Numbered from the stretch's first letter, positions 38,889 to 54,720 are shown. The stretch is DNA of 64,000 nucleotides from Magallana gigas (GCF_963853765.1 NC_088858.1:14632001-14696000); one strand, 5' to 3'. The notes: generated by a model from the sequence alone, not told the origin. Numbers and translations are program-made.

Positions 38889-41800
38889 TCACTGCATGAG
38901 CAGGGCACCTGAGGCATAGCTAACTGAGGAGTCACTCATTTTCTTACAGCGGCTTGACTGGGCATAGTTCATGAATTTAAATGACATTCTGCGTCCATTA
39001 CCGTTTCTTCGAAGAGCGTCTATTGCCTAAAAAAAACCCAACAAAATGATAATTATTTAACACAGCCTACTTTTCAGCTGTTCATATCTAAAATGTGGGA
39101 CCTTTCTTGAATGGTAATTCATGTCAACAGAACTTACACTTAAGAGAACACCTATTGGGTATCTGCCACATATAGTGTTTTCATACTCCTTTAAGTAGTG
39201 AGAAAATTTAGCTGGGTCCATTTGTTCTATTGCATCCATTCCCTGAAAAATAAAACCAAACATCTTTTTTAGACACTTTTGTTTAAAAATTTTTGAAAAT
39301 TCTATAAAAAGAGTGCTTATTCCTTATTACACAGTTTTTTATACTTGGATTTTGAACTAAATTTTTGTATTAATATGGATCAAAATTCACATTCCCAAGA
39401 GAAACACTGTAGTTCAAATAGAAAATAATGTAAAATAAATTAACAGAAGCATAAAGAACAGTTCTCAAAAAACAGCAGGCTCTACACACTGTCACATATA
39501 TCAAAATGATACAGAGCACTGCCTGGTGCATTATTTTACTTTAGTTTATGTTAATTGATCATCTCTGACCATCTTACCATTTTATCTAAGGCCTCGATGG
39601 ATTGCCAGATGTCTCCACATGACTTATCGTAGAATGTGTAACGGAATCGCTGTCCCCAGTGACAGAAGTCGGAGGAGATCACAAAGAAGTTTTCTGGGTC
39701 GGCTAGATACTGGCTAAATATAGATCCATACAGCTTCTCCTTGTCCGCGGACAGAGATCCGACCAGTACAGGGATAATGGTAAACTGTCCACGTCGTCTG
39801 CAATTACGGTTACAAATCGGATCATGTCATATCAATGTAAATGTACAGTTAAACACGGTTAAAGTGAACACGCTTACAATAAATTCTTAAATTATTGGAT
39901 GATAGTGCAAGGCGCCAAGTACTGTACTGTTCACAGAGGGTTAAAAGAAATTCTATTGCATAGAAAGAGTATGAAAAAATATTTATATTAATTCTTTACA
40001 TTTTTGCTTTGTTCCTCACCTCTCCATGACTTTAGCAATGTAAGGTAAATGCATCTCTATACTGTGTTCATCTTCATCTGTACTCATTTTCATTTTTTCA
40101 AAGGCTTTTGTGGCAAATAATTCTTCATTTACTAAAAGGAATTGATCATATATATATGAATCTAAAAGCATATACAGTAAAACTCGTTAGTACGAACACG
40201 GATATAGCGAATTCTTGGTTATAGCGAAGTTTTTTTGAGTCCCTGGTAAATTTCTTTACAAATCTTTGCAAAATTTTGCGGTTATAACAAATTCTGATAT
40301 AACGAATTACGGTTATAGCGAACTAATTTTGAGTCTTGTTGAGGTGAATTATAACGAAATTTAACACTTTTATAATGAATTTCTTAACAGTTTAAAATGC
40401 TTGCACTACCCTTTAATATAACATTTTGAGTATTTATTTTCATATAGTTTTTTTCGACTCACAATCCGATTATTAAAGATATCAAAGTAATGTATTTTTA
40501 TTCTAAGCCTCAATTAGCAAAAATTGTAGTCTGGTGAACAGGTCTAGGCAACCTCCGTTTTCGGAGGATAGCTCAATTTCAAGATGGCTGCTGATTTTTA
40601 CCATATATGGAAAGTCACTTTGCATTGTAGGTGAAATTATCCTCCATTTTTGGAGGATAGCATGGGTATATTTCAAAGGCTTCGTGCATATCTTTAATGA
40701 GAAAATGCAAGCACCAGACCATATGGGAATTAAAGTTAAAGGAATAAACTAATGATTGTATGCGGCGATTTGAAATTCTATGTATAGTATTTTCACAATA
40801 TGCTTTGAAAGTGTGTACTTCCTGTGTTCAGTTTTACAAATGACATAGACCATTTACATGTTTCATTTAATAAAAATCACAAAATAGTGATGTTTATTAC
40901 TCATTAAAACATTAATGAGTTCATTCACGTTGAGAGACACACAATAGATATCTTGATCTGCTATATTGTACATGTACAAAGTAAATGTTTGCATATACCT
41001 TAGGAACTTTGTAGCTCTTATTCTAATTAATTCACATGTTATTAAGTATCATTTAAATTTAATCCCTTCACACAAAAAGACATTGTTAAATTTTATTAAT
41101 CAAAATGATACCATTTATAGATATCAATTATCCAGAATATTGAAAAAAATGTGAGAGTCTTCACATAAGATATTTTTCTTTAAATCAGCCCTGCAATTAT
41201 TTAAACTTAAATATTTATTAAATATTATCAATAATTATAATTATCAATAGCTAAATAAGGTGATATTTTTATAGTACATGTATAATAATTATATTTTATT
41301 CATAGTTAACTCCCTTTGTAAAAACAGAGTTAATTGCCCTTCATCTGAAAAGATCCACCAGGGGGCGCATACATCTATCCTCCAAAAACGGAGGATAAAA
41401 TCTATCCTCCAAAAATGGAGGTTGCCTAGACCTGGTGAAAGAAAAATATGTATATACTGAATTCGCAATAGTTATTAGGAATTTGTTATACCGATATAGT
41501 GAATTACGGATATAATGAAGAAAATCCATCGGTCCCTAGGACTTCGCTATAACCGAGTTAAACTGTAACTCTTTCACACCAAATTTTATACCTTGTACTT
41601 GTATAATCAAACAAGGAAGATTTTCAAACTGTAGACATGTCTAATTTTTATTCTATCATTAAGACAACAACTTGTTATAAACTTTGTTTAAAGTTGATAT
41701 AAGCTTTGTTAGAAATTCATTACACTTATAGGTACAGTCCTGATATTTTGTTCATTAGTAACAGTACATGTACTAATGTACTCACTCTTCTGGTCTATTG

Positions 41801-43554
41801 TCAGATCATACAATGGCGTCTGGTAGTGAGAGGTTTCAGTGAGGGCACAACCGGACAGACGAACATGGTGGGAGGGACCAAGAATGAATATTCTCTTACT
41901 GTAGAAAGAAATATCTAAATCTTCAAAATAATCTGGCATGTGGGTTTATGCAACCTAATTAAAATTAGATCTTAGATTTGCTCATGTACGATCGCTACAC
42001 TAAGTTGTATAGCGTATCATAGAGGAGCGGATTTACATGTACAAGTCTACTTTTAATTAGATTGAGGGTCATGCTTTCATGCTTTATGTGTTCATACTCC
42101 AAATAAAATTACCTCAAGTTTATAATTTGAATTTTATTCTAGATCTTCAAGTGCACGTACATTCTACTGTATTTCATGTAAAAAAAAAAACCTATTTCTT
42201 TAATATTTGAAATATGCCATATAAAGAGTAAATTATGAGAGTATTTCAAACTCTATGCCTCTGTGATGAAATACTGATTGGTTCTTGCAGTAGAATACTT
42301 GCATGTTAGATGGATCAATCTGCCTGTAGGCATGGCCTCCACAAGCTCCACAATATACATACCCTGCATGACTGAAATATAGAGATTTACAATCAACAAC
42401 GTGGACTTATCATTTCATAGTTGTCTGAAAGGTTATAATAATCTTTTTGGTTTTTTCTCCGCTACTCTCATACTTAAATGCATGTGCGCATACTGAAATA
42501 TAATTTGTAAGTCTCGATACCTTCATGCTTTCCATTGGATGCAGACCAATAAAAGAGCCATTATTTATTAAAATGACAGCTGCAAACTGTTGTTTTAAGT
42601 TGAAGCAGTTGAGGTAGAAGAATATGACCTCAGTATGTTTATTATAATTCTGCTATGATTTATGAATGTAATTGATGCTCATAATTTATAAAATTTCAGC
42701 TTTATAAATAATCATTATTCTTCTTGATCCAAGAAATAGTTAATGATAAACAAAGATATATATATAAACACACTGCTAAAATTATAGTGAACTCAGACAC
42801 AACTTAGACACTACATATCTAGAAACGCTAGGACACTTTGGTTTTCATTCTTACGGAGCAATTATGGCTCTTGCTGGGGAGTAGGATGGCTGGGCTTTCG
42901 ATAACCACTCATCTAACTGGCTGCTCAACTCCCTTCCTGGAAAAGAAAACAATATCTTAAATGTTTCAATTTCAAAATTAACGCATATGTCTAGACTGCT
43001 GAATATAATATTCAATGATGACTATGGTTCATTAGTATTCATTTGTTTTCTTATAAATAAAAGAATAAATATTAATACATTCTGTATCATCCACATGATA
43101 AATAAACACAGTGCCTTGCACAACTTTTATTATATAACCAATTTCATTATCATTCATCAGTTCATACTGTATCATTAGATAATTAAGAATATTCATAATT
43201 AATTAGATTTATTTGTCATACATCATCAACACAACACTGACCAATTTTTTAAATTATTTCAAAATGTTATTATTGATTACACAAGTACCCCCTCCCCCGC
43301 CCCAACTAAACAAAAACAAACAACTGCAAACCAAAAACAAAGAAAGAAAGCCACACCTTTCAGTTCATTAAAAGCTTCGCCATGTTGACTGAACCATGAC
43401 TCCATAAGTTTGTGTGATATACATCACAGAATACTAAGATACAGTGCCCGTTTCCATGTGATCTTTTCATCTGTTAATATAGAATATATCATATAAACTC
43501 ACCGTCGTTTGTGTACCAGCTCCCTGCGTGTGTTGCCCGCCTAACTTTGGACAT
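38889..43554 (-). CDS. MEMO1: Protein MEMO1, 8 exons, 296 aa
   Basis: Exons 43554-43503, 42936-42855, 42371-42303, 41898-41786, 40131-40020, 39797-39578, 39242-39138 and 39026-38889 sum to 891 nt. Motifs: [74 protein letters not shown]. Confidence 0.97.
40175..41565. mobile_element. Tc1/mariner(pogo)-type MITE interrupted by a nested element
   Basis: TA|CAGTAAAACTCG ... CGAGTTAAACTG|TA ends in MEMO1 intron 4. Confidence 0.7.
40539..41434. mobile_element. Nested DNA element with ~33-bp terminal inverted repeats
   Basis: CAGGTCTAGGCAACCTCCGTTTTCGGAGGATAG ... CTATCCTCCAAAAATGGAGGTTGCCTAGACCTG, flanked by GTGAA on both sides. Confidence 0.75.
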
Positions 43555-45229
43555 AGTTATTCCTATGGCTACTGTACTGTTAATAACTGACCACCCTTCG
43601 GAGAGGCCTTCTTTATAATGGTTAATTCGGAATTCCTGAATTTCCTTTGCTTTGTTTATCAAATCATTTGTATTTCGATCCCGATGTAAATATTTTTAAC
43701 TGCAATGTGCGCAGAGTTATTTTTAGAAATAATTAACGAAATATAATGTCATGTATTAAAATGATGATTTTTAATTACTAAAGTATGATCCTTATAACAC
43801 TCAAGGAAATATTTTTTTTTCCAGATTTCAAAACCATGTAATTTAGATTAATGTATGTGTCAAACTACTATATTTCGCATAAATTTATCCATTACCAAAT
43901 ATTTATAAGCCAAAAAAAAAAAAAGTCCAATATCATATAAATATATAGTGTGCCTTTTATTTCTAATATCATAGTAGAAATATTTTTTCTATTTCTATAT
44001 TATAGTATCGTTATTTTTTTTTATCAAAAGACTTATTATAATAATTCAATTTTCTTATATTTACATATGAAAAAATGAATTATTGCAATAATTAACATGG
44101 AGTGTGCCCCTTCCACTTTTTGGGAGTATGTAAAAAAATCGAATGGAAATATGGAAAGTGGAGTTAAAGCAGAGACCTAAAAGTTATTTTTGTCTCTGGT
44201 TATAGATATACTACGCCACCCACTCCAAGATGTTGGATTTTTTTTTTTTGGTTTGTCATGATTTTTTGGATGAGTCTGCCCCCCCCCCCCCCCCCCCCCA
44301 ATTTCAAAAACGATGCTACGTGGCTGAGAATAAATGCTCAAATCAATGCCAATGTCTGCATGTGTATTGTGTATTTCTCTTTTCTAAATAATCCCCCCCA
44401 GTTATGATTCATTGTAATTGAGAAACTATTGAGTAAGACCGCTGTCATTTAAACCAGTCAATATTTTCTCACTGTCATTTCATATGCATACTAATAAGTA
44501 GCATACCAGTGATTTGTACATTATAAGTAATACTGGAAATATCGTACAATTTCACTAATACATGTGACAATGTACCTGTAATATTGAACATTTTTAGTAC
44601 AGTTCATGTGATAGTGTACATTTTAGCAATACCAATAATACTGTACAATTTTAATAATACCTGTGACCTTGTAGATTTTTAGTGATATCTGTGATATTGT
44701 TCTAAAATAATAACTCAACGAAAATTTGCAGATTCCTGAGAAATGATTGCACACTTACAAAACTGATTAAAGATACTGTTCGAATTGATATGTATATACA
44801 TGTATATGAACATGCCCTTTGAGAACCCATTATTTCCAAGCACACCAAGAAACCCCGAGTATAACAACCACTTCGAAGCATCTAGAGGAATAATCCTATA
44901 AATCGATCGATGTCCCCCTAATTAACCTGAGTCATAAACCATGAGCTGTTTAAATTCTCGACTGCATACCGTGACCTGCTATGACAATACTACCACCTGA
45001 ACTTTAAAATTACATAGCTTGTATGCTAGTAGTGAATGAAAGAGTCATGAAAACGTAAACAGATATTGATTTCGCTTTCGAGGACGTATACTTGAAATTG
45101 TGAATCTCCATGATACTATCTATGCTAACAAGTGAAAACATTACGGATTGAATAACCTGTCAACTGACGGAATATAAGGGACAGCAATGGATAACTTGGA
45201 CCAACTCTATGTGGTGATTTAGTGCCATA

Positions 45230-48200
45230 ATGCCATCAAGAGTAGGGAGGTATGTGGATCGAGAAATGGGACAAATGGTGGTTGGGGGGGGGGGGGGGGC
45301 TTATTAAGTTTTAATTACTGAGGGAAAATGCCTACAGTACTGCAATGTTAAAGAATTATTTCGAAACCAGTTACGTGTGGTATTAAAAGTGTGCTTTGTT
45401 TTATACATTTTTTATTATGTTCATGACTTTATTGACTTTTTATACAGTGCTGCGATAGGCGAGGCTACACAGGGCTCTAAAGAGGTTGCTCCAATCGTCA
45501 AGGAGGGGTACATGTTTAAGAGAGGTGAGTTATCACTGGTTATGGATTGCACTTTTCATAGGGGCACGGATCCATAAGAATCTGAAATCTTGCGTATTTG
45601 AGTAAGCTCGCAGCATAACATTGAAAACACAAATTAGGTAAACGTAGTAAATGACATTCATACACTTAAAAATAGAAGATATAATTTTAATGTCTTTTGT
45701 GAATTAATTCACACACGTGACACCTACTGCGTTTTCATAAGACAGTACACCGCAACTGTCTGTCTTATAGTTTTTAATTTTTTAAACAATTCCCTTTCTT
45801 ATTGACCAATTTGGCACCACTGACATATATACGTGTTCTGCACATACATGTATTTCTAAATAAGAGTTAACATTTGGCATCGCTTTGGAATTGAAGAATG
45901 CAGACAAATAGAATTTAAAATTAACAGCTGATTAATGAATTATAATCAATTACTGTACACATGATGTACATACATGTATCTCCTCTGACTTTTTAGGGGA
46001 GTATATACGTAACTGGCGGGCCCGTTACTACATCCTTAGAGCTGATGGCGTGTTTCATGGCTTCAAGTCAAAAGAGGAGGCTCAGACGTCAGCAGAAATC
46101 CAGAATGACTTCATGTTACAGGGTTAGTACCTTAAGGCTATGAATTCTAAAATGTTACGAGTGGAAACCATTACAATGCATACGAACTGCCTATAAAAGA
46201 TGCCTATGGGTCACAATGCTCACCTGAACAATAATGACTGTTCAATTACACATCAAAAAGCTATACATTTTAATAGTTTTTGTTTTTCTACTTATGAAAT
46301 CAATACAATGCCAAAGTATTCCTTGTGAAAAGTATGCAAACTGGTTCATGTGTACAGCAATATCAAACCTTTAACAATAAAGTTTGTTGTGTCTACATAG
46401 AGGATGTTACCATAGTAACCCACGAAAAGCCCAAGTTAAACACCTTTATTGTACAAGGAATAATTCTCCGTGGTATGCAGGTGGATAGGATATATTACAC
46501 AGAGACAGCAGAGGACCGAGAGGAGTGGATCAGTGCCATACAAACAGTTGTGGATGCTCTTGGGGTATGACTAGTATTTTATGATTGCTTGTTATCTAGC
46601 TTAAGGCTGCCAAAAATTAATTCAACGTTTAACATCACTTCAAAATACCAAACCTATGAGGGAGGGCGATAAAATTAAAACAAACAAAATTTTTCAAACA
46701 AATGATCTTATTCATTTACATTATTATAAATACAATGAGTATAGTAGGTTATCTCTTTTATAGTGATCTTTCCAGATAATCCCCAGAAGTAATTGATTTA
46801 TAGTCCATAATATGCTCTAAACATTTCGAATTTCTAGAACTGGAAAAAATATAATAAAAATAGGGGTTTGGTTTTTTTTTCAAAACTGAATTTCTCCTAA
46901 ATCTACCCGCGTGGGTTACGTTAAATATAGAAATAACTTTGGACAGCCTTATGTGTCTTATTGCTGGCCTTGTCATTCTGACTTGAAGAGGTTCAACATA
47001 TTAACTCACCCAATTGTCAACCAACCCTTCTCTTTTGCCATCTTGCCCTTACCCTAATACATGTGTTTACTAATCCTGAATGAATTGAAAATGCATAATA
47101 AAATTTAAACTCTAGTGAATATATATGTACATAAGGAGTAATAAGATTTTTTTTTTTAAATAAAAAACTTGAAATTACACCCAAACATTAAACAATTATT
47201 AATCCAAATGATAATTGTACTCACTAAAGTTTTCAGTAGGGGTGACTCCACAATGTTCGATATATCAGTATAAAGACACATGATAAAAGCTTACAGTATG
47301 TTAATTGATTTATTTTCTTGGTATATTGATAAATAATACTATCACAAATTTGACACAGAACAGAGTAAAAGCCCTCAAAACACTGCACAAAAAATGTACA
47401 TGTATCACAAGCATTTCCAATTTTCAACACATTTGTACTGTAAGTAATCATTTCAACAATCAATAAATTCAAGTGAACAAAATAACCTGAGGTTATATCA
47501 TTAAAAGTATTCAGCATAGTAATGAAAAATACACAGTATTATTAACAATACAAAACATTACAGGTTGGCAACTGGAGATCTGCTTTCAATGAACTAGGAG
47601 AGAGAGAAGAGAAGATGTATGACATCTCCCTGCTGAACTCCTCCAGTAAAACATTAAATGACCTGCCACCCAAACTAATCGTTCGTCCTCTACAGCTATC
47701 GGACTACGATAAAGGTGCACAAGAAACCAACATTGAAAATGACAATCAGAAATTACAAAACCTGTCTTTTGAGCTGTAGATCAATTTTGAATTTGGGACC
47801 TGAATAAATTCATTATTTGCAGGTTTTCTTGAGCTGTTGTCTCAAAGAAGCAACACAGGAAATATTTCCAAACCAGAGTTTAGAAGTAAGTGACACAGGC
47901 ATTTTTCAATGCATAGCATTTGTGGTTTCCTTTTCCTTTTGACACTTAGTATATAAGCACTATATCTTTGATTCCAAAAGAACAATTATTTATAGTTTTG
48001 TTAGACTAGCTAACTCAAAAGAGATACTAGCATAGAAATTTTCTTTATATGATCTCACAGCATCATTTTCTTATTGTACTAATATATTAAATGAATCTAT
48101 TTATGGATTGAATCTATCTCTTATCACTCTTCTTCATCAAGTCTTCACAAATTCCTTGTTTTAGTATGTATCTTTGTTACTTTTAAAAGGCTTATTTAAA

Positions 48201-49334
48201 AAAATGGCATCTCCTTCAAATACCTACTATGTAACAGTGGTTGAGGATACAGCTATAAACCGAGTCATTTCTACTGCAACACTTGTCACAGAACTCCAGT
48301 TTAACCAAAGAAGTCCAATGGTAAGAGTGAAACAACTAACAAAAAATCCTTAAATAGAAAATTGGACACTCCATTAAATATGCACCCTCGTCGACACATT
48401 TGATGAATTTTCTAAGGATGGAATACTAAATATATTTAAGCACATAATATTATATAAATAGTGCCTGTTTGGGAGGGTAACAGTTGAAATTGACACCCCG
48501 AGAAAACCATTGTCAACCGACGCGAAGCGGAGGTTGACAATGGTTTTCGAGGGGTGTCAATTTCAACTGTTATCCTCCCAAACAGGCACTATTTATTTTG
48601 TTATACTGAATGTCTTTTTTAAAAAATTTAAGAAAATTTTACTGCTTTTATATAGGAATAACGTGAATTCTACAGCGAACCGTACGCGCATAATTTTCGC
48701 GCATGTAACATTTTTTAATGTTACCCGTTGCCAAGTGCGTTGCTAACGCTGAGGGTAATAGTAAATATTATTAACTGCGTCTTAACCAATCAGATTTTAG
48801 TATTTAACATGAAAGTATAACAAACATACATGTTTACCAAAGGCAAGAAATATTATATTTAGTTCATGTAATTGATAGACAATGCCAATTTTATATGACC
48901 TTGACCCTATTTTTTAAGGTTGGGTGGATCAAGGACATTGTTATTGACAACAGCAAGGGGAACCAACCACAGCTAAAAAATGTGTAAGTTAGTTCATGAA
49001 CTCTCATACATGTAATATATACATATCACAGTTATCGATAATTGTTGTTCATATCAATTCCACATCAACAAAGCCATACATGTTTTTCAGAATTGATTTT
49101 CTTTTGAATTTCATTCCCCATCATGAACAATTTTTCCTTTTTTTTTTTCATGAGTGTTTTACAGAAATTTAACCGAAAAAAAAAACAACAAGAAACAAAA
49201 TTGCAGCAATTTGCTCTCAACTTTCTGTAATTCATAGATTGGTGAACACTTTAAAGGATCTTGGAGAAACATGTGGCTGTAGTCGAGTAGAAAGCATTAA
49301 TACATCTTTGGGGACGCAAGATGGAGATATTTAG
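45230..49334 (+). CDS. Akt-type PH domain - GNPNAT1-like GNAT domain fusion protein, 9 exons, 297 aa
   Basis: Exons 45230-45249, 45448-45524, 45997-46122, 46401-46564, 47564-47714, 47823-47885, 48190-48320, 48919-48983 and 49238-49334 sum to 894 nt, all GT-AG with matching phases. N-half: IVKEGYMFKRGEYIRNWRARYYIL...NTFIV...EDREEWISAIQTV (Akt PH). C-half: MYDISLL...LIVRPLQLSDYDKGFLELLSQ...YYVTVVED...VISTATLVTE...GWIKDIVI (GNPNAT1-like). Confidence 0.82.
48454..48823. mobile_element. Crypton-like hairpin element in intron 7 of the PH-GNAT gene
   Basis: 143-bp near-perfect hairpin (48454-48596) with loop GACGCGAAGCGGA, plus a ~230-bp tail with short TTATACT/AGTATAA inverted ends. Confidence 0.55.
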
Positions 49335-50411
49335 TGCAATAGAAATGGAGTTGGAGGGGGGTGTGTGGGTGATAAATTGTGATATTTTATCTAACTTTTT
49401 ATATATTTTTTGTCCAACCATGTATTGTTATCATCATTATTGATGTTGATTGTATAAGTATTAAAGGGTATTTATTTTATACAAGTAGCTATGGGTACTA
49501 GAAAAATTAAAAATGTTTACAATGTATGCAATGATTGACAGTGATTAAACTTTTATGACAGTATGAACGATATTTTGTTGAGCTACAAATACTAGTATAC
49601 ATGTTTACTGTAGTACATTTATCTTTACGATTTCCCTTATACCCAGAGCAAACTGGTTAACAAGCAAGAATGTAAACATTTAAAATAACTGATTTGAAAT
49701 CAGTTAACAGTAGCTGAAGACAAAATCACAAGAATACGATAGAACCGTTCATGTACCAGAAATTGTAACAGTAAGTTATTGCATGCCAAATCCAAATCTA
49801 TTGATTAGACTACTGGGAAACATGTATCTTTTGATCAGGTGATGCCATACTTTTATATACTTTTTACATTCCTATTGTTGAATAAATATTTTGAAAAACC
49901 ATATAGCGTAGATTTTTTTTTCACATACATAATGATCAAATTAAACCTTAAAGTTTCAATGCATAATTAATATTATAGCTACCAGTATTACTATACAGTG
50001 CAGTTCTTTATACAGTAAATACCGATACATCTAATTATAATGAAATCCCCTTGACAAACATTTCTTATTCACTATAAACAAAGCTTCTTATGATCATTTG
50101 CATGTAGTTTTTAAAAATATGTTTAAAGACTTTAAAGAATGAAAGTGACTTTGCTGTAAGCTTTAATTCATTTTGGCAATGCATGTTCATAGTCACCATG
50201 TTTTACTGAATTTTATCAACTGTAGTTACAAAATTTGGCAGAAATACATGAACTAGCTGATATCAATAAGCATGTTTTTCTTTGAAACTTCATCAAGTTC
50301 ATTATTAACAGTTCATTAAACAAATCATTACTGCACACGTCCTCTGATAACATTGCTACATTTACCGGTAATTGACTAGAAACCTGGCTAGGAACTTCTT
50401 TTATCACAGTT

Positions 50412-51980
50412 CTATACAAGTTTGACAAGAAATGAGTCACTAACAGTGATGTACCGCAGCCATTTCTGTGGAGTTGTCTGCTCTTGATTCAAAACTTTAA
50501 CAGTTTTTATCTTCATTCCCGACAACAAGCAACCAGAAATTTCAAACTTCATCCGAACTGGTCCCACATCTTCCCTGTTTAGTGGGCCTGACTGGTTTAT
50601 CAGCTAAAAGAAAGCAAAGAAAAAAAGGAACATGTGTGGTAAGTGAACAAAGTGGGGACAACACAATAAAAGATGGTCACAGCCAATGTGGCATTTATGG
50701 ATTTATGCTTAATGAGTAGTAATTACTGGTTAAAGCTGTTATGTCTAAAAATTTTAAACTCAGTACATGCATAACCTTATCATTTATAAATTTTGTTTAT
50801 AAAGAGTGAAAACTGTTTGTCCCCCTGAATCTCTAGCCAGCTGCTCTACCACCTGAGCAATGTGGCGCCAGTATTTAAACTGGCCTGACTGTCACTTTTC
50901 TCTGCCTCTAACTGATCTTCCTCTTGAAGTAACAGGGTTGGCACTGTACCGAATGTAACTTACAGGATATAAGAAATTATGACAATGTGATTAAAATACA
51001 GATCTCTACATAAGCGCACAGCGCTTATATAGAGATCTGTATTTTAATAAGATTGAAATTATGATGGACCAGACCAGAATTTCAACTCGTTTCGCCAAGT
51101 CTATAGTCATTTGCTCTACCAACTGAGCTATCTGAATAGCGTCCGTATTCAAAACGGTTGACTATCACATGCATAATATATTTTAAAGCTTTTTCCAGGA
51201 GTGGCATATACCATCGGTATCATTGGTACTGGAAAAAATTGTCCCTAAAAAGCATTGCCTCTGCAGCTACAATTCACTTTCTAAGGAGGATAATTTCCAA
51301 TGCTACAGATGTATCCCTGCTAACATGCAATATTTATATAAAACATGTATTACATTCTTGAACTGATTAATTCTCAACATGAATACTGATCTTACCCTGA
51401 ATTGGGCCACTGACTCAGCTTGCGGTGGCAGGGTTTTCAGGGTCCACAGAATTGTGCCATCATTCTTCTCCAAGGCAGCTGACTGGTCAGGGCTATCCAA
51501 GTGCTGGGAGATGCTGAAAAAAACCCACCATAAATATACTACAAAAGCCCATTGCGCTCATTTTCGTAAGTAAAAAAAAAAAAATTCAAATTTTACAATA
51601 TTGAACCAAAAAAAATATTTGGAAAGGTAAAAAATTTAAAAAAAAAAACAAAAAACAAAAAAAATGTGAAATTTGAACTTATGATGTACAGATTCATAGT
51701 AAACTCTGTTATTTGACAATATTGCAAAAGAAACTACTTATGTAATTACACTTCACTTTAATAAACAATACTTCATATCATGGAGGTGTCCCATACCACC
51801 TTAATGTAAGGTATGTGTGCCTAATTCTATTATTAAAAGAAATACTTCTAATGTAAGGCACCTAATTTTATTATTAGAAGAAAAAATTTTAACATAAGGC
51901 GCCTGTGGGCTATATAATTCTCACTCTGAATATTAACTCAATCAAAATCAGAAATGAATTGTTATTTGATAAAAAGATAG

Positions 51981-52016
<36 letters not shown>

Positions 52017-53448
52017 GAACAATAGGTATGATAAAATCAGCTTAATGGAGTAATAATACAAACTATCTGGACAATGTACAATAATACATGTAGATCCTGT
52101 ATAAATAAAATCCATTTTTCCCCTGGATATTCTTATGTTTATAATCATTAGTCCCTTTTCAAACAGGATGATTTTATAGTCATATCATATGTTGAGTATT
52201 GCAGTTCTCAAAAAGATCCTTAACAATTGTTTATATATGGGATATAAACGTATATCAAACTCTGAACCTTCTCGTGAGGCCAAAGAATTGTCCTGGGGCC
52301 AAAGTCTTAACAATTATAAAGAATCATCTGGCTGATTAGTTTCTGAGAAGAAGATTTTTAAAGATTTACCATACATATTCCTTTGTTAAACTTTGACCCC
52401 CATTGTGGCCCCACCCTACCCCCGGGGTTTATGATTTTCACAACTTTGAATCTACACTACCTGAGGATGCTACCACACAAGTTTCAGCTTTCCTGGCTGA
52501 TTAGTTTTTAAGAAGAAGATTTTTAAAGATTTACTCCATATATTCCTATGTTAAACTTCGACCACCCATTAAGGCCCCACCCTACCCTCGGGGGTCATGA
52601 TTTTCACAACTATGAATCTACATTACCTAAAGATGTTTCCACACAAGTTTCAGCTTTCCTGGTCTTATGGTTCATGAGAAGAAGATTTTTAAAGATTTAC
52701 TCTATATATTCCTATGTTAAATTTCGATCCCCCATTGTGGCCCCACCCTACCACCGGGGGTCATGATTTTCACAACTATGAATCTACACTACCTGAGGAT
52801 GCTTCAACACAAGTTTCAGCTTTTCTGGTCTTATGGTTCATGAGAAGAAGATTTTTAAAGATTTACTCTATATATTCCTATGTTAAATTTCGACCCCCAA
52901 TTGTGGCCCCACCCTACCCCTGGGGGTCATGATTTTCACAAATTAGAATCTACACTACCTGAGGATGCTTCCACACAAGTTTCAGCTTTCCTGGTCTTAT
53001 GGTTCATGAGAAGAAGATTTTTAAAGATTTACTCTGTATATTCCTATGTAAAACTTCGACCCCCCATTGTGGCCCCACCCTACCCCCGGGGGTCATGATT
53101 TTCACAACTTTGAATCTACATTACCTGAGGATGCTTCCACACAAGTTTCAGCTTTCCTGGTCATATGGTTCATAAGAAGAAGATTTTAAAATATTTATTC
53201 TGTATATTCCTATGTTTAATTTCGACCCCCAATTGTGGCCCCACCCTACCACCGGGGGTCATTATTTTCACAAATTAGAATCTATACTACCTGAGGATGC
53301 TTCCACACAAGTTTCAGCTTTCCTGGTCTTATGGTTCATGAGAAGAAGATTTTTGAAAATTTCTCAAAATTTTTCATAAATTCCTAATTATCTCCATTTG
53401 CAAAAGGGCGTGGTCCTTAATTTTCACAACTTTATATACTCTTAGGCT

Positions 53449-53497
<49 letters not shown>

Positions 53498-53596
53498 GAA
53501 GATGTTGAAAATGTGAAAAGTTTACAGACAGACGGACAGACGGACGGACAGACGGACGGACGGACAGACGGACGACAGACAAAATGTGATCAGAAT

Positions 53597-53632
<36 letters not shown>

Positions 53633-54720
53633 TATCAGTAACCTACACATATACAGTAAGCCAATTTTCATAAACTTCTAACTTTTTCTTGCATAGGACG
53701 TACTTGATATTGGTGTAACATTACCAGTAATACATATATACAAGTACTTACTTTGACACAGACCGGGGAACTCCAAACTTTAGACGCACATTAACACAGG
53801 GCACAGGTAATCTACTTTTTATCCTCAACGTCACCATCATGTCTCTACTCAAAGTAAAACATCAAACCTCAAACCTCAAAGAACTGTATACCAGAAAGTT
53901 ATATGTGGATGATAAAGAACATAGCAGATAAGAAACCCCATTAAACATGCATCAGCAGGTTATACCCTATGTAAAATATTTCTGCATTTAATAATTATTA
54001 CAGCATAATAGAATTAACAGTACAGGTATATTTACTGAAAGTACTACATGTACATAATTCAATGACATGTGTTTAAAAGTATCTACTTGGATAAATGTTT
54101 TATGCAGAGAAAACAGTTCCAGGGACTATGAAGTATTGTATAAAACTGTCTTGCATGCTGTAGCCTTTATGTTATAATTTTCTTTTGTCTGTCATTTGAT
54201 TTCATTTTGACTGTATGCCAACATGGTGATGTCATAAACCTTTGAATTGAATTGTAAAAGAGACACTACATGTACCTATATATTATTGCATCTCTAACAG
54301 ATGAGAGAGAATATCAATTCAAAGTTACAAGAGGTACCAGGTATATATTAAACAATACATAAATTATGTGCAAACAAACTTTCTGTAAAACTACAAACTG
54401 GATTGCTTTAAAATCATTTTCATTATATATTAGCTAGTGGACTGCTAGATATCTTACCTGCTTTGTTCTATTGGTTGAACAGAGGAGACAAAATGAAAAG
54501 GGGAGGTAATGCTGCTCTCCCCACTCACACTGTATGACATCAGAGTAAACTAGAACAAAAACATGTTTCCATCAACAAAGATTCCATGTACAATAAAAAG
54601 CATTGAATACATGTTATATGATGTTTATGTTCAGAACTATAGTTAAAACTTTGATTTTTCGTTTCTTTTTATTACGTCAGTTTTTCAAAAACTTGACATT
54701 CTGACTTTGTGTGTAAATAA

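Follow-up and report, generated by a model that had tools for sequence, protein, structure and literature searches.

We analyzed a stretch of 64,000 nucleotides of the Magallana gigas genome (GCF_963853765.1 NC_088858.1:14632001-14696000), referred to below as the window, with positions counted from its first nucleotide. A gene on its plus strand, whose coding exons lie between 45230 and 49334, encodes a protein that joins a PH domain of the Akt type in frame to a domain of the glucosamine-6-phosphate N-acetyltransferase type (GNPNAT1 or GNA1). We call it the fusion gene and refer to its two parts as the PH half and the GNAT half. The fusion gene is a real, spliced and expressed protein-coding gene. 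It is conserved across oyster genera, is under purifying selection and has lost its catalytic features; we have very little doubt about this. It was born by exon shuffling and has so far been found only in oysters. Our best overall explanation combines an exon-shuffled oyster gene with an adaptor or competitor mechanism, and we give this combination, taken as a whole, slightly less than an even chance of being right.

Gene structure and transcripts of the fusion gene

The exons were re-derived from the sequence by a script. Nine exons gave a coding sequence of 894 nt, that is, 297 aa (34 kDa) followed by TAG. The translation was identical, letter for letter, to the nine-exon open reading frame (ORF) of 297 aa proposed in an initial annotation of this stretch. 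The phase-0 donor after 46564 with its G-V-stop read-through, the phase-0 acceptor at 47564 and the open 17-codon linker described there were reproduced as well. The coding segments on the plus strand are 45230-45249, 45448-45524, 45997-46122, 46401-46564, 47564-47714, 47823-47885, 48190-48320, 48919-48983 and 49238-49334, and all eight introns are of the GT..AG type. For evidence from RNA, the stretch 44300-50200 was compared with contigs of the runs X1, X2 and X4 (three studies) and with the raw poly(A) run X23. The features of the gene are as follows.

45002..45249, plus strand: exon 1, a 5' untranslated region (5'UTR) of about 228 nt and the initial 20 nt of the coding sequence, with the ATG at 45230
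45448..45524, plus strand: exon 2, N-terminal conserved peptide and start of the PH domain (VKEGY..KRG), ending in phase 1; junctions 45249/45448 and 45524/45997 found in X1, X2 and X4
45997..46122, plus strand: exon 3, PH domain with the equivalents of Akt1 E17, R23, R25 and N53; tblastn match to Akt
46401..46564, plus strand: exon 4, PH domain, C-terminal part; equivalent of R86 present, W80 replaced by Leu; phase-0 donor GGG/GTATGA
46565..47563, plus strand: intron 4 (the fusion intron), 999 nt, phase 0 on both sides; read-through gives G-V-stop at 46565-46570
47564..47714, plus strand: exon 5, 17-codon linker (47564-47614), then a GNPNAT1-type start and strand beta1
47823..47885, plus strand: exon 6, GNA1-like helices alpha1-alpha2; 63 nt, the same as in canonical GNPNAT1
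48190..48320, plus strand: exon 7, GNA1-like strands beta2-beta3 (YYVTVVED...ATLVTE)
48445..48825, no strand assigned: repeat in intron 7 resembling a miniature inverted-repeat transposable element (MITE), non-coding with respect to the fusion gene
48919..48983, plus strand: exon 8, strand beta4, E104 changed to K (GWIKD), degraded acetyl-CoA loop
49238..49744, plus strand: exon 9, helix alpha3, strand beta5, short tail modelled as disordered, TAG at 49332-49334, 3'UTR of at least 410 nt (contig L022 maps to 49238-49744)

All eight introns were recovered as GT..AG joints in the RNA contigs of X1, X2 and X4. The junction between the two halves, 46564/47564, which had been predicted from the sequence alone, was found in a single contig from each of X1, X2 and X4 and also in a single raw poly(A) read from X23, in each case skipping 999 nt with GT..AG borders. 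X4 also contained a single contig of 713 nt that ran from the 5'UTR through the PH exons into exon 5, reaching 111 nt past the fusion junction. A protein search found a 297-aa protein (P0014) with four differences from the window protein; its 90% cluster held 38 Logan sequences. When the 1422-nt contig of P0014, L022, was mapped to the window, it proved to be a nine-exon mRNA, fully spliced and with the whole ORF. A contig from a second Crassostrea species, L023, had the same fusion mRNA structure with the complete ORF on one contig. The junctions in RNA together with L022 and L023 indicated that the fusion transcript is real.

At the exon-4 donor (46564), no joint or loose end other than the joint to 47564 was detected in X1, X2, X4 and X23. 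It was also considered whether the PH exons serve as an alternative 5' end of the Akt gene downstream. This was rejected, because 46564 joins only 47564 in the RNA of these runs.

Unspliced RNA contigs were found over 47205-47592, ending 29 nt into exon 5, in two of the three runs (X1 record 2 and X2 record 7). Their depth was 12.5 versus 16.8 for the spliced path in X1 and 7.8 versus 22.3 in X2, i.e., 35-75% of the spliced depth. The remainder of intron 4 was almost silent in RNA, and in X2 coverage ran on past the exon-4 donor. The unspliced RNA may represent an internal promoter for a 151-aa GNAT-only mRNA starting at Met147, or a retained intron. Met147 (47615) is the ancestral GNPNAT1-type start, and its MYDISLL aligns with LYDPxLL of GNA1. 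In another Crassostrea, the contig L024 (protein P0017; L024:244-729) read through the exon-4 donor into intron 4 and encoded a PH-only product of 161 aa. The window equivalent would have 130 aa and end with G-V-stop. P0017 was also considered as a frameshifted linker allele, and this was rejected on the mapping of L024 as a read-through.

The unspliced contigs, the X2 coverage past the donor, the read-through contig L024 and the alignment of Met147 with the canonical GNA1 N-terminus would all fit another view of the locus. The main products would then be two separate proteins, a PH-only protein of 130 aa made by read-through and a GNAT-only protein of 151 aa made from an internal promoter, and the fusion mRNA would be a tolerated by-product. 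We regard this as quite improbable. The spliced fusion path was deeper in all three runs, complete fusion mRNAs were found in two species, and gene models of four other genomes predict the fusion. The PH-only form in this genome would need the read-through stop. In addition, the linker has kept its frame, its length and a Ser residue (and a Trp residue in five of six orthologues) over three genera, which is unlike a 5'UTR.

In the RNA contigs, exon 1 began at 45002-45020 and ended at 45247 or 45249; L022 mapped from 45112 and L024 from 44997. An in-frame TGA at 45215 lies ahead of the ATG at 45230, and this ATG is therefore the earliest possible start. In the 5'UTR (45002-45229), seven upstream ATGs open short ORFs (2-13 codons), which hints at translational control. 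Residues 1-13, encoded by exons 1 and 2 (45230-45290 and 45448-45470), form a peptide (M-x-S-R-V-G-S-A-A-x-G-E-A) that is near-invariant in all six orthologues and is not present in Akt; it holds an R-x-x-S site. Intron 1 carries a run of about 18 G at 45283-45300. The MITE-like repeat in intron 7 had at least 100 matches in the genome, and its near-full-length copies were 93-99% identical. Its 70-nt inverted arms (48454-48523 and 48527-48596) were 93% complementary, and its RNA contig depth was in the thousands.

Origin of the two halves

The PH half was assigned to the Akt type by several comparisons. It matched Pfam PF00169 (PH) with 44.7 bits against a cut-off of 25.1. In phmmer searches against Akt PH structures, it gave E=1.4e-23 with Akt3 (2x18) and E=3.5e-23 with Akt1 (1h10). 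Single exons gave only sub-threshold PH matches and, for the GNAT exons, no Pfam match, so full-length orthologues were needed. The sole other match to PH exon 4 in the genome was 42 kb downstream on the same strand. As the initial annotation had stated, the 64-kb window contains no kinase exons. When 60 kb beyond the window was examined, an intact Akt gene, the source of the PH exons, was found just outside it; its start is located some 38 kb downstream from PH exon 4.

84.3-98.4 kb of the extended window, plus strand: Akt gene (L013:318-9913 and L014:4144-4398; G000:C6:14716318-14730398), with PH exons at 84.3, 87.3 and 88.2 kb and kinase exons at 88.5-91.9 kb

The PH exons of this Akt gene break at the same codons and in the same phases as exons 2-4 of the fusion gene. 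The third PH exon of Akt is 15 codons longer, and the GT of the fusion donor falls on the Val codon of Akt 'LKV'. The PH half and the PH domain of this genome's Akt share 47% identity. In a tree, the six fusion PH domains formed one clade on a long stem, grouped with oyster and abalone Akt (support 98/96). The Akt gene itself has two alternative last exons, each encoding a tail with a turn motif and a hydrophobic motif (FEKFSYHG, 93680-93913; FEQFSFHG, 98144-98398), which suggests mutually exclusive C-terminal isoforms.

Akt1 binds PIP3 through Lys14, Arg23, Arg25 and, to a lesser degree, Arg86 (PMC9417420). These four residues correspond to Lys31, Arg40, Arg42 and Arg104 of the fusion protein, and they were invariant in all six orthologues, as were the equivalents of Akt1 Glu17 and Asn53. 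Judged by these residues, the PH half likely binds phosphoinositide. The equivalent of Trp80 was Leu in all six orthologues, with a one-residue insertion adjacent to it. In Akt, Trp80 sits at the interface where the PH domain meets the kinase domain. Its change to Leu is expected, since no kinase domain is left for the PH domain to dock on.

The GNAT half was traced in the same manner. The canonical GNPNAT1 gene is located at 2.85 Mb on the same contig and shares 39% identity with the GNAT half. Its four internal introns have the positions and phases of fusion introns 5-8, and the exon lengths are similar (63/63, 134/131 and 62/65 nt). Its first listed exon also begins at an acceptor in phase 0, and the conserved 'L-[FY]-D-P-x-L-L' follows within a few codons. 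Two further GNPNAT1-like paralogues were found about 60 kb apart on contig C5 (L017-L020; G000:C5:21658001-21738000). They are diverged, with intact catalytic motifs (RGRLEDI, YRGQQLGK and FVPLYQKFGF). Reconstruction of these loci was incomplete, with exon B missing, and they served only as a rough row in the tree. Oysters have at least four GNA1-derived genes. In the GNA1 tree, the fusion GNAT clade was monophyletic, and its stem was very long, which is what relief from catalytic constraint would be expected to produce. The trees of either half did not resolve the order of the duplications relative to the paralogues of this genome.

The full-length AlphaFold model, based on the six-sequence alignment, was poor (predicted local distance difference test, pLDDT, 49.5) and gave no information on domain packing; the domain-level model was used for this reason. 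The model of the GNAT half (pLDDT 80.8) had strands beta1-beta5, helices alpha1-alpha3 and a disordered tail. In a Foldseek search against the PDB, the top 27 matches were all GNA1 or GNA1-type, the best being 4ag7_A (E=1e-13, template modelling (TM) score 0.78, root-mean-square deviation 1.6 A).

The catalytic residues were compared with those of Caenorhabditis elegans GNA1 (4ag7). Residues 147-283 of the fusion protein aligned with this enzyme at E=9e-21, covering only chain residues 15-137 of 165. In CeGNA1, the sugar hydroxyls are bound by Glu104 and Asp105 and the phosphate by Lys136 and Arg164; Tyr149 stabilizes the leaving thiolate, and Cys141 and Met161 line the active site (PMC3413214). 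GNA1 enzymes are obligate dimers whose active sites lie at the interface with an exchanged strand (PMC3413214). In the fusion protein, Asp105 alone of these active-site residues was invariant. Glu104 was replaced by Lys; Lys136 was replaced by Arg in Crassostrea and Ostrea and by Gln in Saccostrea; Cys141 was replaced by Asn or Ser. The GNAT half ends about 28 residues early, and everything from about position 142 on is gone, including Tyr149, Met161, Arg164 and the last helix and strand. The acetyl-CoA pyrophosphate loop R-G-K-Q-L-G-K has become K-G-N-Q-P-Q-L-K-N. Its Gly (Ce G118) was Lys or Ser in all six orthologues, and five of the six had a one-residue insertion. An 11-residue N-terminal segment was also deleted relative to GNA1. 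The Pfam GNAT models PF00583 and PF13508 gave no match at E<=1 for the fusion proteins P0014, P0015 and P0016, and canonical GNPNAT1 (P0020) matched both.

The GNAT half is almost certainly a non-catalytic, conserved pseudoenzyme, because the acetyl-CoA loop Gly, Glu104, Cys141 and the whole C-terminus have been lost. An active glucosamine-6-phosphate N-acetyltransferase that the PH domain brings to membranes would agree with the clear GNA1 homology (E=9e-21 to 4ag7) and with the UniRef name of the C. virginica orthologue. We consider it very improbable, given that the loss of Glu104, the loop Gly, Cys141, Tyr149, Met161, Arg164 and the last helix and strand is common to all six orthologues, that no Pfam GNAT match was obtained and that the clade sits on a long stem branch.

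The matching parental introns, the transcripts and the conserved structure bore out the earlier proposal of an in-frame, exon-shuffled chimera of an Akt-type PH domain and a GNPNAT1-like domain. We propose the following course as the simplest. Four 5'-terminal exons of a mollusc Akt gene would have been duplicated upstream of a duplicate of GNPNAT1. The latter would be a DNA-level duplicate whose own first exon was lost or bypassed. A new donor in the fourth Akt exon would then have been spliced in phase 0 to the acceptor of the second GNPNAT1 exon, and the former upstream sequence of that exon would have become the 17-residue linker. Neither parent was retroposed, because both halves keep the parental introns.

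Orthologues, selection and neighbourhood

Orthologues were searched with exon 4 against all 1.84 billion representative proteins, followed by word-indexed searches. Orthologues of 287-297 aa were found across Crassostrea, Saccostrea and Ostrea, and gene models in four other oysters predict the fusion. The Crassostrea virginica protein (287 aa) carries the UniRef name 'Glucosamine 6-phosphate N-acetyltransferase'. The Saccostrea cucullata protein has 290 aa, the S. echinata protein (293 aa) is named 'RAC-alpha serine/threonine-protein kinase-like' by NCBI, and the Ostrea edulis protein (294 aa) is named 'RAC-beta ... B-like'. The remaining matches were ordinary Akt kinases, matching the PH half only, or ordinary GNPNAT1, matching the GNAT half only. 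No protein with both halves was found outside Ostreidae by these word-indexed and short-query searches, whose sensitivity is limited. Other oysters thus carry the fusion and this genome has separate Akt and GNPNAT1 genes, as the initial annotation had suggested might be looked for. Its claim that the combination was undescribed held in part. No paper describing the architecture was found; the proteins of four other oysters are already in public databases under automatic names.

Three genomic loci, from Ostrea and two Saccostrea (L025-L027), were examined. The proteins mapped exactly onto nine GT-AG exons of 20, 71-77, 126, 164, 139-151, 63, 128-131, 65 and 73-94 nt, with five exon lengths identical. 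A Memo gene lay upstream on the opposite strand at all three loci (Ostrea edulis and two Saccostrea), as in the window. The origin of the fusion predates the split of Ostrea, Saccostrea and Crassostrea.

Selection was estimated by the ratio of nonsynonymous to synonymous substitution rates (dN/dS), using NG86 (Nei-Gojobori) on unsaturated pairs; between genera, dS was >1.3. The ratio ranged over 0.07-0.10 for the PH half and 0.17-0.30 for the GNAT half, well below 1 in both. The pairs were as follows.

Window versus P0013: PH half 0.086, GNAT half 0.27
S. echinata versus S. cucullata: PH half 0.07, GNAT half 0.17

The linker evolved faster than either half (dN/dS 0.2-1.0). Its 17 codons were of equal length in all orthologues, with no stop and no indel; Ser135 and Glu144 were invariant, and Trp was present at position 4 in five of six. 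By these substitution patterns, both halves and the reading frame joining them are under purifying selection.

These data bear on another view, in which the ORF would be artefactual or a pseudogene in decay, either a chance frame over two gene relics or a chimeric assembly. The degenerate GNAT half would suit such a reading, and the initial annotation had no expression data. The junctions in independent studies and in a raw read, dN/dS far below 1 in both halves, and the exon structure and synteny kept in three genera effectively refute it.

The fusion gene is flanked by two genes on the minus strand, and a third gene lies farther upstream.

39057-41939, minus strand: Memo-family gene (PF01875), head-to-head with the fusion gene
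50410-53846, minus strand: AP-complex mu-subunit-like gene, tail-to-tail with the fusion gene; it matches the downstream neighbour in Ostrea (PF00928)
33343-34497, plus strand: single-exon ORF of 384 aa, a rhodopsin-family G protein-coupled receptor (PF00001, E=1e-24)

RNA contigs of 2.3-2.5 kb extended from exon 9 beyond 50200, and the 3'UTRs of the fusion gene and the AP-mu-like gene may overlap. At 52548-53098 there are three tandem repeats of about 166 bp, each with an ORF of 72 aa (MLNFD..PPY..GS); the stretch 37062-37352 contains similar ORFs. A Pfam search with one of the copies (52714-52932) gave no match.

Possible function and comparison with known systems

We tentatively propose, as the most likely function though at less than even odds, that the fusion protein may be a non-catalytic phosphoinositide-binding adaptor or competitor in PI3K signalling, possibly as a dimer; the proposal is made by analogy. 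The PH domain would take the protein to PI3K-activated membranes that contain PI(3,4,5)P3 or PI(3,4)P2. There, the kinase-less protein would compete with Akt and PDK1 for lipids or would carry a partner to the membrane, it would modulate how Akt and PDK1 are recruited, and the dead GNA1 domain would serve for dimerization or partner binding. PHLDA3, a PH-only protein, represses Akt via competition for phosphoinositides (PMC7312810), and the same mechanism is described for PHLDA2 (PMC5982771). By this analogy, the Akt decoy that the initial annotation had offered as one option is plausible.

A homodimer was predicted from two copies of the GNAT half. The interface score ipSAE was 0.64 versus 0.00 for the best control, the pLDDT of the partner was 78, and three runs shared at least 66% of contacts. 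In calibration, 21 of 30 proteins solved as one-chain pairs and 0 of 23 solved as single chains scored high enough for the dimer mark. The score suggests likeness to the GNA1 dimer, and it may reflect the model's memory of solved GNA1 dimers. If the GNA1-like half is dimeric, the fusion protein would be bivalent, with higher membrane avidity.

Several points weigh against the adaptor or competitor proposal and the oyster-specific origin joined to it. The full-length model, with its pLDDT of 49.5, is uninformative on contacts between the domains. The dimer score may reflect memory, as noted above, and the strand exchanged in real GNA1 dimers is absent here. The change of W80 to L and the neighbouring insertion may alter the PH domain. 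The unspliced contigs over 47205-47592 and the exon-4 read-through may yield GNAT-only and PH-only isoforms that hold part of the function. Finally, the restriction to Ostreidae comes from word-indexed or short-query searches.

The protein might instead be a targeting adaptor for hexosamine metabolism. The dead half would pair with active GNPNAT1 or would bind glucosamine 6-phosphate (GlcN6P), N-acetylglucosamine 6-phosphate (GlcNAc6P) or CoA. This would bring the synthesis of UDP-N-acetylglucosamine (UDP-GlcNAc) to PIP3-rich membranes, e.g., near chitin synthase, or regulate it there, or it would let PI3K signalling respond to hexosamine levels. Purifying selection acts on the GNA1-like core and on much of the modelled dimer-interface surface, and in GNA1 enzymes, which are obligate dimers, the interface holds the active sites (PMC3413214). 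Canonical GNPNAT1 and the two intact paralogues in the genome are possible partners. Moreover, Asp105 is retained, and the replacement of Lys136 by Arg in Crassostrea and Ostrea is conservative. However, Lys136 is Gln in Saccostrea, and Glu104, Cys141, Tyr149, Met161, Arg164, the loop Gly and the exchanged C-terminal strand are all gone; the sugar-phosphate site and the reciprocal strand swap are thus compromised. We consider this adaptor unlikely.

The initial annotation had proposed a GNAT module that binds a hexosamine metabolite. With most active-site residues and the C-terminal 28 residues gone and the Pfam GNAT match failing, this did not hold up, and the sequence gives no support to a link with hexosamine metabolism. 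A stronger form of the idea, in which the fusion protein would be a PI3K-controlled organizer of hexosamine and chitin metabolism, its PH domain reading PIP3 and its dead GNA1 domain capturing GNPNAT1 or sensing GlcN6P or CoA, appears somewhat more doubtful still.

The fusion gene is a clean, datable case in which exon shuffling has produced a new animal gene, with both parent genes persisting in the same genome, and one of its domains has turned into a pseudoenzyme that is still under selection over three oyster genera. It encodes a natural kinase-less Akt PH protein, and one would expect such a protein to compete for PIP3 with Akt in the way that vertebrate PHLDA3 does. Insulin-like and PI3K-Akt signalling in oysters is investigated in connection with growth, glycogen storage and stress responses, and an endogenous modulator would therefore be relevant. 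Database names can also be corrected, as these proteins are neither RAC kinases nor glucosamine-6-phosphate N-acetyltransferases. If the dead GNA1 domain does bind GNPNAT1 or a hexosamine metabolite, two major nutrient-sensing pathways would be linked. If the organizer reading were true, insulin-like signalling would position or gate the UDP-GlcNAc supply at membranes, a new link between phosphoinositides and amino sugars through a pseudoenzyme.

Full-text literature searches found no description of the combination of PH and GNA1 domains or of oyster Akt paralogues of this kind. Compared with Akt/PKB, the N-terminal 129 aa of the fusion protein are an Akt-type PH domain with shared intron positions and with the lipid-contact residues kept. 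In contrast to Akt, the fusion protein is without the Akt linker, the AGC kinase domain and the hydrophobic motif, carries W80 changed to Leu with an insertion, and has the extra N-terminal peptide (M-x-SRVGSAA-x-GEA). The NCBI names 'RAC-alpha/beta kinase-like' therefore mislead, since both the kinase domain and the hydrophobic motif are missing. With GNPNAT1/GNA1 (EC 2.3.1.4; PDB 4ag7, 2huz and 1i1d), it shares the fold and the four internal introns; a homodimer resembling theirs is predicted for it. It differs from these enzymes in being truncated after strand beta5, in the change of Glu104 to Lys, in the lost loop Gly and in failing the Pfam GNAT models.

PHLDA3 and PHLDA2 are likewise kinase-less PH proteins, and the competition for phosphoinositides suggested for the fusion protein is taken from them by analogy. 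They belong to an unrelated PH subfamily and lack a second domain; their genes are vertebrate ones under the control of p53 or EGFR. The oyster protein has Akt itself as its source and includes a pseudoenzyme domain.

Exon-shuffled chimeric genes such as Drosophila jingwei are known, in which partial duplicates are joined via phase-compatible introns and kept by selection. The architecture described here is already public as automatic predictions, and it is not a categorically new system; it combines an exon-shuffled chimera, a PH decoy or adaptor and a pseudoenzyme. As in other exon-shuffled chimeras, both parents are identified, the introns match, the fusion intron is in phase 0, one mRNA is made and selection acts in one lineage. 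The differences are that both parents of the oyster fusion retain their introns and that catalysis, one of the parental functions, has been lost in the fusion.

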